From positions 310,001 through 374,000 of the forward strand of contig CAJFCJ010000014.1 of NCBI GenBank assembly GCA_904063045.1: a stretch of DNA of 64,000 nucleotides, read 5' to 3'. The notes beneath the pieces are model-generated. The model made no database searches, was not told where the DNA came from, and saw only the letters and a program-made list of their open reading frames with translations. The stretch comes from Dimorphilus gyrociliatus (Eukaryota > Animalia > Annelida). Shown in pieces: positions 9,023 through 15,292 of the stretch. How positions within the stretch are numbered: position 1 is the stretch's first letter; every line of letters begins with the position of its first letter. The translations under genes and the position numbers were made by a program.

Positions 9023-10542
9023 GGCTATACCTCTTATTCTTTGGAAGAAAGGAAAAAAAACATTATCGTAGAGGCGATTCTTTAGTGCATTTATTATACA
9101 AAGAAAGCTACAGGCCATTTCTAATTGAAATAGAACTGTTTATTTATTTATTTATAAAATTTTCGTATGAATATAAAAAAATAACTAAGGGCTATTTTCA
9201 ATTTTCTCTCTTTTATTTCTTTTTTACTTTTCACCGCGTACGACTCTTTCTTTCTCTTCTTCCTCTTCTTCTTCTTTTGTATCCTATACCTATAACTCTA
9301 GAGAAAGCAGAGGCGGAATAAATCAACGTTTTTCCACCTCCCTTGGCCTACTTTGTTACGTCCATTTGTAAGATAGTGTATTATAAAGGCAATAGAAAAT
9401 GTCGGTCAGTCTCCTAAAAGGAAAAACAGTAAGAGAAAACAAAGGATTAAATATTCTTGACAATCTATTTTCGTTTGTAGTTGTTTGTTTTTGCTGTAAA
9501 GTAAAAATAAACAAAGAAATAAATTCCTAGAATTACTTGTTCAATCATTTTGCTTTTTGAATGCTAGAGTTTAAACATTGTATTACTTATATATCTTTAT
9601 TCGTTCAAGAAGAGAGAGAAACAAAAGGAACATACATATACATATATGTAGAGACTGAATTACAAGATAACAAGGATAAAAAGAGAAAAGAGAAGATAAA
9701 AATTTTTATTCAAAACATCACAGATAACTTTGATTGGCCTTGTTTATCTTTGAATATATAAATATATATATTTAAAAATGTATACATGGAGATACATATG
9801 TGTGTATAATGTACTTTAGCAAGCACTTCTTTTCAATTGAAGTTTGTTTGGTTTGTATGTGAAAACATTAAAGATATACGCCTTGTTTGTTTTGGGGTTT
9901 TTAGGATAACTACTTGAAAAAAATCTTCTTTCCTGTTCTAATTAGATAAAACAATAAAAAACAAAAAGTATCTTTGAATATAAATGACCAGATAACAAAA
10001 ATAAGGAGAAGGTAGGAGCAGAAAGGTGGTTTCTCTCTTTTCAACTTTCGTAAGTTTCTTCAGTTAAGCTGAGTTCATCTAATTCCGACTATAAAGGATA
10101 AGAATAAAAAAAGAAACAGATTAATAATACTGCAATACTGTAATTTATAGAAAGCACATAAAAAATAACATTTAATTTAATAGACTATAGTCAGCAGAGG
10201 AAGGAGAAAAGTGGAATGGAAGGATAACGCGGAAAAATGAGCACAAATTACAAATCGTCAAAAACAGTCAGCTCTTTGCCCGCAGTGTTTTCGAATAGGA
10301 ATATGGAATAAATAGATTGATTGATCAACGAAAATATGGATGGGTGGAGGGCTTGATAGATGAATGATTGGGTGAAGAAGAGTTTAGGAGGGGATACGAC
10401 GAGGAATAGAGATAGAGAGGGAGAGGGAGAGACGTACCTTGTTACTGTGTTTTTTGTAAAATAGTTTAATATAAAGGTAAGCAATTAATGAAAATTAATA
10501 AAAGATTGTTAGCGTTATTGATATCTTTTGGTAAATTCCTTA

Positions 10543-13500
10543 TCAATTATCACTTACGTTTGCGGCGCCACCTCTCGAAGCAGGTCTTTGGCGAACGCCT
10601 CCACTTGATCCACTCAGGGATGGATCAGAATCCCATCTTTCAAGTTCTTCTCTAACTAAACGTTCCATCTGTTCTCTTTTCTCCTCGTCGTTACCACTTT
10701 CTGTTATACTATCTAAAATTTTGCTCATTGTTTCTCTTCTCTTACTCTTTGCCCTCTCCATGGCTTCTAATTTGACAAGTACAGCGTCTATTTTAGATAC
10801 AATAGAACCAATAGAATGCTCCATTCTGTCTACTCGTCTTGCGAGTACTGTGAACTCTTCGAAAGAAACCCCCGATACAACTCCTCCACTACCACCTCTA
10901 TGACCTCTGAGATCATCTTCCTCACTAGTTTCAGAACCCATACTACTTCCGGGTCTGGCAGTTTTTGGTCTGGATGATAGCGGTCTTTCGCCACCTTCAG
11001 CATCTGCTAAATCGCTGTTTAATTTCTGCTTTTGACCTTCCAAGTCAGCCTGCATTCTCTTCTGTTCCTCTTCATCCAAGATTCTATCGCCGTCCAAATC
11101 GTATTTAGCGAATACAGCTTCGATTTCTGCTTCGGCATAGCCTCTAGTCTTTAGATCTTGTCTCCATTCATCAAAGTCCAATTGTTTATCCTGATTAATA
11201 TCAGCCGATTGTAGAGCCTTTTGGATATCGATTATCTTGTCTCTCTTGATGTTTAATTTCTCCAACATTCTATCGTAGCCCTTCTTAAAGTAATCAGCCA
11301 TTTCGAATTCGTTAGTTTGGTTCGAAATATCGGCTTTAACTTCCGAGTATGTATCGTTAATAATGGCCAAGAACATGTTGAGTAGTACGAAGAAAACGAA
11401 GAAAACGTACAAGATGAAATAGATTGGACCGAGTACTCTGTTGGCTGCTTCCAACTCGTGGAAATTGAAATCACCCAAAATAATTCTAAATAGAGTAAAG
11501 ATAGAACTTGGGAAGGATGAAAAGTCCTTAACTTGTGTGCCAAAGATCAAATAACCGAGTTGGGCAAATGCCAAGAAAACTATAAAGAACATGACGGCGA
11601 ACCCGGCCAAATCCTTTGCGCATCTTGCCAATGTGGAGCTGAGTTGAGTCATGGTTTTATTAAATGAAATGTACTTGAAGACTTTAACCCAAGCAAAGAA
11701 AACCGTGATAGCAATTGCGCTGTTGAATTGAACTTGCCAATAGGAAAGGAATTCAAAATCAGGATATTCTTCCGGTTTCTTTAGCAAATCATTTAACATC
11801 TTATTAACTTTGATCGTTCTATAAATAAGATAAAAATATATTAATTAGAGAGGAGACTATCATCTGAGGGAGAGAGAGAGAGAGGGATAGGGATTTCTTA
11901 CCTGTAAATGTTAAATGCTACACAAATAAGGGAAATGATGATGACAAGTATATCAAGAATATTCCAGAAGCTCTTAAAATAAGAAAATTTTAGCTTCTTT
12001 ATCTCCAAGGCTTCTTCAACGATGTAATAACAAATGAACAGGCAGAAAATAGCTTCGCATGCCAAGACAAAGTAATCTCCAACGGTTACGTAACGGATAA
12101 GTTTGACAGTTCTAAAGTTCCAGGAAGGTATAGCACCTCCAGTTGCTGGGAATTCTATTAGTAATCTTATAACGCAAAATAGGTTGATGTTTGCGTTATA
12201 GACGCTAAAATCTATAAAAACTGCTCTTGTTCCTCTATCCAACCAAAGATTGTCCTTAAGTTCTTTAATAAGTTCATAGGATTTAACTTTGGTAGTTCCT
12301 AAATTTTGTACGTAGCCACCGCCTCCGTATCTACTGATAAGACCCCAATGGGACGATCCGTCCAATTGCTCGTCAGTATGATATTTCCATCTATGGAAAA
12401 CAAACAATTACGATTAGGCGTTTATAAAAACTATATATATAATATAGATAAAACTAACGCTGATCCATTCATCTTGCCGAAGGGTTCTTTGTCCTCAATG
12501 CTTTTTGCGTAGCTGTCATAGCAGGCCTTGATCTCATTTCTAAAATCGTCATGAACAGTACAGGAATCGTTTTTAACCTTGGAAAAAACAAGAGGAGAGA
12601 AATGATAAAATACGCTTAGAACTCTATGAATACAGTATATTTACCTTTAATTGTCTAATCCTCGGTACTCCTAGTAGTTTGTTCTCGTAGAAAATATAGC
12701 CTAATTCTTCGTTGGTGACATTTTTACCGTTATACCATTGTTCCCAGTAGAGTCCGCTGACAAGAGGTCCTTCGGCAAACTAATTTTAGTAAAAAATTCC
12801 AGGAATTACACATCAACTTATTGGATACAAAAAAAAATAAATATTACTAATGTATATGCATCTTAAGATGAATAACAAAAGGCTAACAAGGGCGAAGGGG
12901 TTAAAGGATTTAGGTTAAAGATGAAACATATAAATATGCGCTTTATACAAAGAGGAGGGGGATGACGGAGAAAAGATTAATTAGTTGTCTAATAAACTCT
13001 TTTTTAAGTGAATGTTATGTTTCCTATAGAAATTGCATCGCGCGCCAAAATGACAGGGGAAATAAACATAAAAGGAGCTGTTTTATGGGTAAGCGATGAG
13101 CATTGCGCCAAGTTACCCTCCACATATCGGCCATAGTCGTCATTCCCCTATAATTGTTCTTCGTATCAGCAAAACTCGAATCAAGGAATAGTTCGCTCAT
13201 TACTTTCGTATAATAGTACATTGTCGAACTGGTCATACCGAACGTTACTGTAAACCGAATGACAAAGTGGTTAGTAAGTTCAAGAAAAATATAACTACCC
13301 GCCAAAAATCTTTTACAGTTGTCATTCCCCTGAAAGCGTTACGAGTTTCTTCAAATTGAGCGTCTAAAAACAGCTCGCTCATTACTTTTGTGTAGTAATA
13401 CATTGTCGGACTCGTCATACCAAACGTGACTGCCATGATATAAAATAATTAAAAAAAATCATTCTCTTTCTTTACAGCTTTAACTAAAATTCTTTTTATA

Positions 13501-15292
13501 TTAATATTCTAGCAAATCATCCACTCTCTTCCCTTCCCCCTTTTCATCATCATCATCATCATTATCATCTTCTTCTTCTTCTTCTTCTTCTTCCTACTCT
13601 TCTTATAGTAATTCTTAAAAGTTTAAACGTAATAGGAAAGGCTAAAAAATATTTTTTTTCAGCTGCCATCTGTCGGATTGCGTCTCTCTTTCACTCACTT
13701 CTTTTTTTATTTGAATAAAGTTTTTGTTGAATTTACTCGGTTGAATGTTGTATAATTATCTTTATATATAGATATATAAATACATTCAATATTTGCCTTA
13801 CCTACACACAAAACGACCAAGAAAACGATGTAGATTATCAATTCTCTTAGGGTTGTCTTTACGTGTAGCTCCTTGTCCTTTTTCGTATCTTCCGTTTGTC
13901 TTGTAGCCCATAACGCTAGAGGAGAATTACCATTACTATTTGTTATAACATTCTATCAATAGGAAAATATATTGGAAGGATAAAACTGCAAAAAATAGAT
14001 GACAAACTTCATACTGACAATCAATTGTTCAAACAAAAAAAGACGTTAGTTCATATCGATAACGGGCGTCAAAAGAGAGAAAAACTTGTTTGTAATGAAT
14101 AACTAAATCAATAATAAATCAATAAATGTCTTTCTTTTATTCAAAAACATTTTTTCTTTTTGGTCGATTCGTAAAGGACGACGCCATTTTAGTTTTGGTT
14201 CAATTTATTAATTTTCCTTGCAAATTTTCGATATCCGCTTTTCAAAGAATTGTTCAATTATAGTCGCTAAATAATAGATGAAGATTGAGTTGATTTGATT
14301 CTATCTTATTAATTATTCATAGATTTTTAATAACTAAAATAAAAGGCTTATATTGAATTGCGATTAAACTGTACATGTCCTCATGAATAAATTTAATTAA
14401 TCAATATCTGAATTGATTAAGCGATAGTCTAATGATGGTATATTCTAAAGAATAAGGTCATTTCCTCATATTCAATAAAAAGAGAAAGAAAGATAGATGT
14501 TGAATGTATTGATTATCTTGCATTTATCCGATCATTAGATCATTATTATTATTGTTCCTATTGATTTTGGCTATGTCTATTCTCTCCTCTTATCACCGAA
14601 TGCATGCTTCATGTAAAAGACTCTTACTTTTATGATAAAACTATACCTTGATTGATATTACATATTTTAAAATCTTTTAACTTTATATCATAGGTTCTCT
14701 TTCTTTCTCTTTCTCTTTCTCTTTCTCTTTCTCTTTCTCTTTCTCTTTCTCTTTCTCTTTCTCTTTCTCTTTCTCTTTCTCTTTCTCTTTCTATCTACCT
14801 ATCTATCTATCTATCTATCTATTTATCTATCTCTCTTTGTGCATGCTACAAGTTGTTCATGTTACTATTTCAATTTTGTTTTTAGTTTACTTACATCTAA
14901 CTGCTCTGGAGAACATGTTACAGCAACCAGACTTGGAATCTCTTGCAACAACGGGTTCGGGTCTCTCTTCCATTTGCACAGTTCCTTGATAGAGCTATAG
15001 GATAAAGAAGATAAATATATTTTTACCGTTGTTTATTATGTTATGATAATTTAGTTAAATAAAACTGTTACACAAACATAAAAATGAAAGAGAAAAATGA
15101 AAGAAAAGAGAAAGTTTTTCTTATTACCTCGCTTTCCATCGGAGCATGCATATCTTCTTCTTCGTTTCGGAATCTTGGGTTGTCGACTCCATCGTCCGAC
15201 CAGGCTTGCCTGCTTTGGGCAGAGCCGGGACGTTGGTTCGAAGCAGAGCTTAGCTGAGCACGGGATCGTGAACTTGCTGGACGAGTTGCCAT
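10543..15292 (-). CDS. PKD2: Polycystin-2 (TRPP) cation channel, ~842 aa per isoform
   Basis: Exons 15292-15128, 14994-14895, 13915-13802, (13429-13299 OR 13247-13117), 12779-12645, 12577-12459, 12390-11902, 11818-10543, all in phase. Motifs: [44 protein letters not shown], pore [21 protein letters not shown]-hand [12 protein letters not shown] and C-terminal coiled coil. Confidence 0.96.
13117..13247 (-). CDS. PKD2: PKD2 alternative exon 4b (131 nt): [44 protein letters not shown]
   Basis: Acceptor ttacag|TA at 13247, donor AGG|gtaact at 13117. Same length and phases as 4a. Confidence 0.9.
13299..13429 (-). CDS. PKD2: PKD2 alternative exon 4a (131 nt): [44 protein letters not shown]
   Basis: Acceptor ggcag|TC at 13429, donor CGG|gtagtt at 13299. 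Phase 1 in, phase 0 out. Confidence 0.9.
14704..14830. repeat. (TTTCTC)n hexamer array followed by (ATCT)n in PKD2 intron 2
   Basis: About 14 hexamer units, then tetramer units. Confidence 0.9.

Follow-up and report, generated by a model that had tools for sequence, protein, structure and literature searches.

Homologous mutually exclusive exon pairs are common in the ion-channel genes of invertebrates, and in the voltage-gated Na+ and Ca2+ channels such pairs swap a short segment by a transmembrane helix and an extracellular loop, tuning the isoforms. In human PKD2, exon 3 is, as far as is known, single copy and constitutive. Steric interference and backing by nonsense-mediated decay (NMD) are both documented as means by which mutually exclusive exons are kept apart (PMC4165533). 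The pairs of the steric type include exons 2 and 3 of alpha-tropomyosin and, in C. elegans, exons 9 and 10 of let-2 and exons 5A and 5B of egl-15, and 14 of the 19 mutually exclusive clusters of C. elegans are of a length that is not a multiple of three and are policed by NMD (PMC4165533).

The window, that is the whole stretch of 64,000 nucleotides of DNA from the tiny marine annelid Dimorphilus gyrociliatus that was analysed, carries on its minus strand two exons of 131 nt, called here A and B, between an upstream exon U and a downstream exon D. The region is organized as follows.

13802 to 13915, minus strand: exon U, upstream constitutive exon, 114 nt, bounded by the RNA joints 13915/14895 and 13429/13802.
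13430 to 13801, minus strand: intron U-A, 372 nt, GTAAGG...CAG.
13299 to 13429, minus strand: exon A, putative major alternative exon, 131 nt coding for 44 residues, with an AG acceptor and a weak donor, GTAGTT.
13248 to 13298, minus strand: A-B intron, 51 nt, with TACTAAC at 13276-13270 and the branch A at 13271.
13117 to 13247, minus strand: exon B, putative minor alternative exon, 131 nt coding for 44 residues, with an AG acceptor and a weak donor, GTAACT.
12780 to 13116, minus strand: intron B-D, 337 nt, from RNA joints.
12645 to 12779, minus strand: exon D, downstream constitutive exon, 135 nt, from RNA joints and the Pfam Polycystin_dom match.

The original prediction, made from the letters of the window, had proposed two exons of this length with intact splice sites and the same phase, 51 nt apart, and the coordinates and the AG/GT sites bear this out; the two peptides were also exactly as quoted there. 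The final base of U starts a codon which the first 2 nt of either exon complete; both exons enter in phase 1, leave in phase 0 and close on a full codon before D. They are identical at 92 of 131 nt and at 33 of 44 amino acids. The repeat scan showed the pair as a 137-nt direct repeat of 72% identity, consisting of the exon and the splice consensus only, in which the likeness ends 3 bases outside the exon on either side, so that the surrounding introns are fully diverged. With their clear homology, equal length and phase and intact splice sites, A and B are a homologous exon pair. The introns that flank the pair (372 and 337 nt) are longer than the three downstream introns (67, 68 and 83 nt), as had been pointed out, and the two introns further upstream measure 979 and 133 nt; intron U-A contains a (GAA)n/(GAT)n microsatellite, found in the repeat scan. 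The donors of A (GTAGTT) and B (GTAACT) are weaker than those of the neighbouring exons, and weak donors are usual for regulated exons. Frame reading of the joined exons showed that in a message with both A and B the first codon of B becomes TAA and that a message with neither is shifted to a stop; a broken frame had been foreseen for both cases. We consider it likely that A and B are a homologous mutually exclusive pair derived from an old tandem duplication, with one of them in each mature mRNA.

The gene was then followed along its whole length, and its remaining coding exons are given below.

15292 (ATG) to 15128, minus strand: 5' coding exon 1, from RNA joints, the open reading frame and phases from exon lengths.
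14994 to 14895, minus strand: 5' coding exon 2, from RNA joints and phases from exon lengths.
12577 to 12459, minus strand: coding exon after D, from RNA joints.
12390 to 11902, minus strand: coding exon, from RNA joints.
11818 to 10558, minus strand: coding exon, from RNA joints.

The RNA joints confirm every exon border except the acceptor of B; whichever of A and B is used, these borders and the phases give a complete coding region of 2514 nt (838 residues). A Pfam search exon by exon gave Polycystin_dom (PF20519, 8.8e-39), PKD_channel (PF08016, 1.9e-60) and an EF-hand (PF00036, 5e-07), and the solved structures nearest to one exon of 162 residues were human polycystin-2 chains (E about 5e-66). 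By its translation, exon U covers the stretch before S1 together with the greater part of this helix, and an equivalent exon is present in the loci of other animals; exon D takes up the protein from helix 2 of TOP, and the exons between 10558 and 12577 supply the remainder of TOP, S2-S6 including the pore, the EF-hand and a coiled coil (Pfam and PDB match). Judged by these domain and structure matches, the gene is a PKD2 orthologue of D. gyrociliatus, the identity first proposed for it. A second PKD2 paralogue, on another contig of the genome (C9:453232-456360), has the exon once only, in a consensus-like form, and we observed that this paralogue does not have the intron dividing exon D from exon 12577-12459 in the gene of the window. 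At the 3' end, the PKD2 stop codon is apparently in a 7-nt micro-exon, TAACAAG (10438-10444, minus strand), flanked by introns 10557-10445 and 10437-10089; the loose contig ends at 10558 in three runs read through this micro-exon into an exon starting at 10088.

A and B each align end to end with residues 238-281 of human PKD2 (full-length numbering), a segment in which S1 ends and the extracellular TOP domain starts. The segment had been placed after S1, at the beginning of TOP, and the alignment agrees with this and adds the end of S1 to it. The human counterpart of A and B is presumably PKD2 exon 3, which we take to be 134 nt long, to code for residues about 237-281 and to follow a 114-nt exon 2. 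Exon U, with 114 nt, has this same assumed length of human exon 2, and the intron positions thus appear ancient.

We examined the divergence between the two copies. The comparison of A with B gave a pS of 0.75, which is saturated, and a pN of 0.19, in line with the divergence of synonymous sites noticed earlier. The first part of the two exons, described as near-identical in protein, differs in 22 codons by 13 base changes, 11 synonymous and 2 non-synonymous, and by one residue. In a simulation of 39 random changes, the number of residue changes was never 11 or fewer, and an open frame survived in a quarter of the trials only. A and B both retain all the residues that are invariant across eight aligned exons, among them the helix 2 Trp of TOP that corresponds to W280 of human PKD2, a residue affected by an ADPKD variant (PMC10192930). 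Each copy is up to 86-88% identical to foreign orthologues as against 75% to its partner, and the two depart from the consensus at different positions. Saturated synonymous sites with a conserved protein indicate that both copies are old and under selection, and their greater closeness to foreign orthologues than to each other indicates likewise that the duplication is old and that neither copy is decaying. Both copies are, on these sequence comparisons, maintained by purifying selection.

The RNA data consisted of the assembled contigs of four public runs, X1, X2, X4 and X6. Run X6 has 99-100% identity to the window and an exon depth far above the intron depth, which identifies it as cDNA of D. 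gyrociliatus, and run X4 comes from a related species, 5-15% diverged. The joint of A to D (12779/13299) was found in all four runs and the joint of U to A (13429/13802) in X1, X6 and X2; the joint of B to D (12779/13117) was found in X6 only, with a depth of 574 compared to 1913 for A to D, so that B to D makes up about a quarter of the summed A and B depth in this run, contig depth being a rough guide. The joint of U to B (13802/13247) is listed in the contigs of none of the four runs. Neither the joint of A to B, which would remove the 51-nt intron, nor the joint of U to D, which would skip both exons, was found in the four runs, whose contigs drop rare forms. Three of the four junctions named in the original prediction were therefore seen (13802>13429, 13299>12779 and 13117>12779) and the fourth, 13802>13247, was not listed in the contigs; the mutually exclusive use that it proposed is supported by the U to A, A to D and B to D joints, and no double inclusion or double skipping was seen among these contigs. 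A search with short peptide words for transcript fragments of D. gyrociliatus returned 26 exon-sized open reading frames, all from other animals.

B is the minor form and is missing from two low-depth environmental runs, as would be seen if one copy were a non-functional relic, a pseudo-exon, or if the pair were an artefact of the assembly. We regard this as extremely improbable. Both exons have an open frame, intact splice sites and a conserved protein with saturated synonymous divergence, both occur in the RNA of D. gyrociliatus, and both were found in the related species of run X4; a base difference of 30% between the copies also shows that they are not collapsed haplotypes. The opposite of a mutually exclusive pair had been described beforehand as the use of one exon only, with neutral evolution of the other; what was found is B joined to D in RNA and selection on both copies. 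In the species of X4, exon A, compared over 13299-13431, differs from the window at 6 of 133 bases, and B with 100 nt of its downstream intron at 13 of 234, compared to 10-15% for the other coding exons of the gene. This low divergence at A and B may reflect an extra constraint around the alternative exons.

The use of the acceptor of B was approached through the shape of the contigs. The B contig of X6 consists of 'AG', the 131 nt of B and 28 nt of D and ends at 13249, and the B contig of X4 starts at the same 'AG', at 13249. Exon U ends in ...TAG, the A-B intron in ...CAG and exon A in ...CGG. The B contigs thus break where U and the intron diverge, as is expected if forms with U spliced to B and unspliced forms are both present in a de Bruijn graph, and since A ends in ...CGG they reach one base past what a form with A joined to B in the graph would allow. 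By depth-bin arithmetic, the 51-nt intron has zero depth in X6 and X4, and the other introns have some coverage. In X4, B is contiguous with its downstream intron, of which 13016-13116 is alignable to the X4 relative. The contig ends and the empty 51-nt intron, read through the behaviour of the assembler, point to an acceptor of B that is in use.

These data also bear on a reading in which B is a poison exon, joined after A so that the immediate TAA leads to decay of the message and tunes the dosage of PKD2. The TAA at the first codon of B after A is what such an exon would need, and contigs from B to D cannot by themselves separate U-B-D from U-A-B-D. However, no 13299>13247 joint appears in any of the four runs, and the 'AG' kept upstream in the B contig is incompatible, in the assembly graph, with the ...GG end of A. 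A poison exon does not need a conserved frame either, yet the protein sequence of B is strongly held by purifying selection, with 11 synonymous against 2 non-synonymous changes in the 22 codons. Such a role for B is in our view very improbable.

The public gene model raises another reading. The largest exon gave a 100% word-search match to DgyrCDS9711 of D. gyrociliatus, an annotated protein of 708 aa (P0001) that opens at a Met inside exon B (window 13117-13236), continues from B to D and reads RQLK-V-KNDSC over the border after D. This model is N-terminally truncated: it is without S1, the N-terminus and the three upstream coding exons. Its start, together with the absence of the U to B junction from the contig joints of the four runs, would fit a B that does not stand in for A in a full-length channel but opens the coding region of a product lacking the N-terminus, made from an internal start or from an incompletely processed message. 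But a protein without S1 could not take the six-helix topology, and conservation extends to the 8 codons of B before that Met (VTFG, the split codon included), behind an intact acceptor. The B contigs of two runs moreover halt at the acceptor and the 51-nt intron is uncovered, which argues for use of the acceptor and not for read-in. Because A followed by B gives a TAA, an annotation pipeline fed a model with both exons would output the same truncated longest open reading frame as is seen in DgyrCDS9711. The start inside B could then come from a both-exon transcript model or from an internal start, and we hold it improbable that B serves only such a shortened product. The finding corrects a public gene model which is cut off at exon B.

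For the mutually exclusive pair, which is our preferred reading, the following mechanism can be proposed. An old tandem duplication of the exon matching human PKD2 exon 3 would have given A and B, and splicing of U to B would place B alone between U and D. The 51-nt intron would likely be too cramped to splice, through steric interference, and messages with double inclusion (TAA) or double skipping (frameshift) would meet a premature stop and be removed by NMD. The A-B intron contains a perfect branch-site consensus, TACTAAC, whose branch A is 28 nt from the donor of A and 23 nt from the acceptor of B; the corresponding distances from the donor are 45 and 57-61 nt in those other short introns of the gene whose branch motif can be recognised. 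The A-B intron, at 51 nt, is smaller than the short introns of the gene, and the median intron of D. gyrociliatus is 66 bp (PMC7854359). A spacing of 28 nt between donor and branch suggests steric exclusion, and a steric block is probably part of what keeps A and B apart. Spacing and length would then probably both forbid the double use of A and B, and the pair would offer splicing biology a further example from a compact genome.

Two other mechanisms were considered. An incompatibility of U2 and U12 splice sites was rejected, as the donors are GTAAGG, GTAGTT and GTAACT, all the introns end in AG and the U12 donor consensus is absent in all three introns. The folding of the flanking introns into docking and selector elements had been suggested as a check: the inverted-repeat scan of the three introns found weak AT-rich inverted repeats only, of 11-24 nt and 76-92% complementarity, and a Dscam-like docking/selector pairing is not supported by these weak repeats.

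We also located the differences between the two exons in the protein. The 11 residues that differ between A and B fall mainly (seven) in the loop joining helix 1 to helix 2 of TOP; a further three occupy the first turn of helix 2, and the remaining one belongs to the end of S1. The AlphaFold model, made with the first 300 residues of P0001 and therefore carrying exon B, has (P0001 numbering) a helix at 4-17, a loop at 18-34 and a second helix at 35-50, with a pLDDT of 83-85 over residues 11-50. It seems likely to us that the gene yields two channels of 838 residues, identical apart from these 11, the A form being the majority and the B form the minority. Should both isoforms be produced, 11 residues of TOP would form a patch singled out by evolution as tunable without harm to the core of the channel, and this patch, mainly the helix 1-helix 2 loop adjoining the ADPKD site W280, could guide mutagenesis of human PKD2.

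The exon pair was looked for in the PKD2 loci of other animals, as had been advised. The loci examined were 7 from protein look-ups, including the leech Helobdella robusta and the sea hare Aplysia californica, and 39 from metagenomes and metatranscriptomes, and almost all of them had one copy of the exon equivalent to A and B. Two copies were found in another animal, at the locus L016 (metagenome contig JAAUYG010195842.1, 779-1543), where two intact 131-nt copies with AG/GT sites lie 503 nt apart and are identical at 92 of 131 nt. The downstream copy of L016 and exon A of Dimorphilus have the motif 'QFEET' in common, and in a tree of the exon over 43 columns, which is almost unresolved, A groups with that downstream copy (94/90) and not with B. 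This grouping is nevertheless not taken to mean a single duplication shared by L016 and Dimorphilus, as the A-like copy is in the reversed order and the tree signal comes from two residues; the duplication in L016 is probably independent of that in Dimorphilus. In four metagenome contigs (L036, L042, L044 and L048), from one group of animals, an additional intron interrupts the corresponding exon after ...YYYTKVM, and there is no duplication.

The neighbouring S1 exon is itself present in two tandem copies in other animals, at L002:4137-4586, L023:762-1208 and L022:1307-1592. The copies of L002 are 120 and 117 nt long, with AG acceptors and GTAAGT donors on both, and are by sequence a candidate for a second, distinct exon switch in this part of the channel. 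One may speculate, though we think it rather unlikely, that the S1/TOP-start region of invertebrate PKD2 is a recurrent target of exon duplication and the helix 1-helix 2 loop a site of functional tuning. If it were so, the loop might select partners of the PKD1 family or set gating across ciliated sensory cells, sexes and stages, and the cell type might regulate the choice of the isoform.

The full-text literature searches found no exon switch of such type described for any PKD2/TRPP gene, and the original prediction knew of none in vertebrate PKD2; the matches for PKD2 together with mutually exclusive exons use both words in unrelated contexts. What is new here is apparently the gene and the site, the kind of switch itself being familiar and not surprising. 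Like the described pairs of the steric type, A and B are tandem duplicates of equal length and phase with the downstream branch site near the upstream donor, an arrangement that leads there to one exon per message. The intron between them is 51 nt compared to 14-30 nt in the steric cases of C. elegans, the steric block being here a putative one, and the exon length is 3n+2, unlike that of the five sterically blocked clusters of C. elegans, which are all 3n. In this respect the pair resembles the NMD-policed clusters of C. elegans: with 131 nt, double inclusion or double skipping is predicted to shift the frame, and double inclusion here to give an immediate TAA. With human PKD2 exon 3, A and B have in common the position, the phase and an end-to-end alignment, at 131 nt against a human length which we take to be 134 nt. 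Compared to the pairs of the Na+ and Ca2+ channels, the swapped segment is here the end of S1 with the start of TOP, which is specific to the polycystins.
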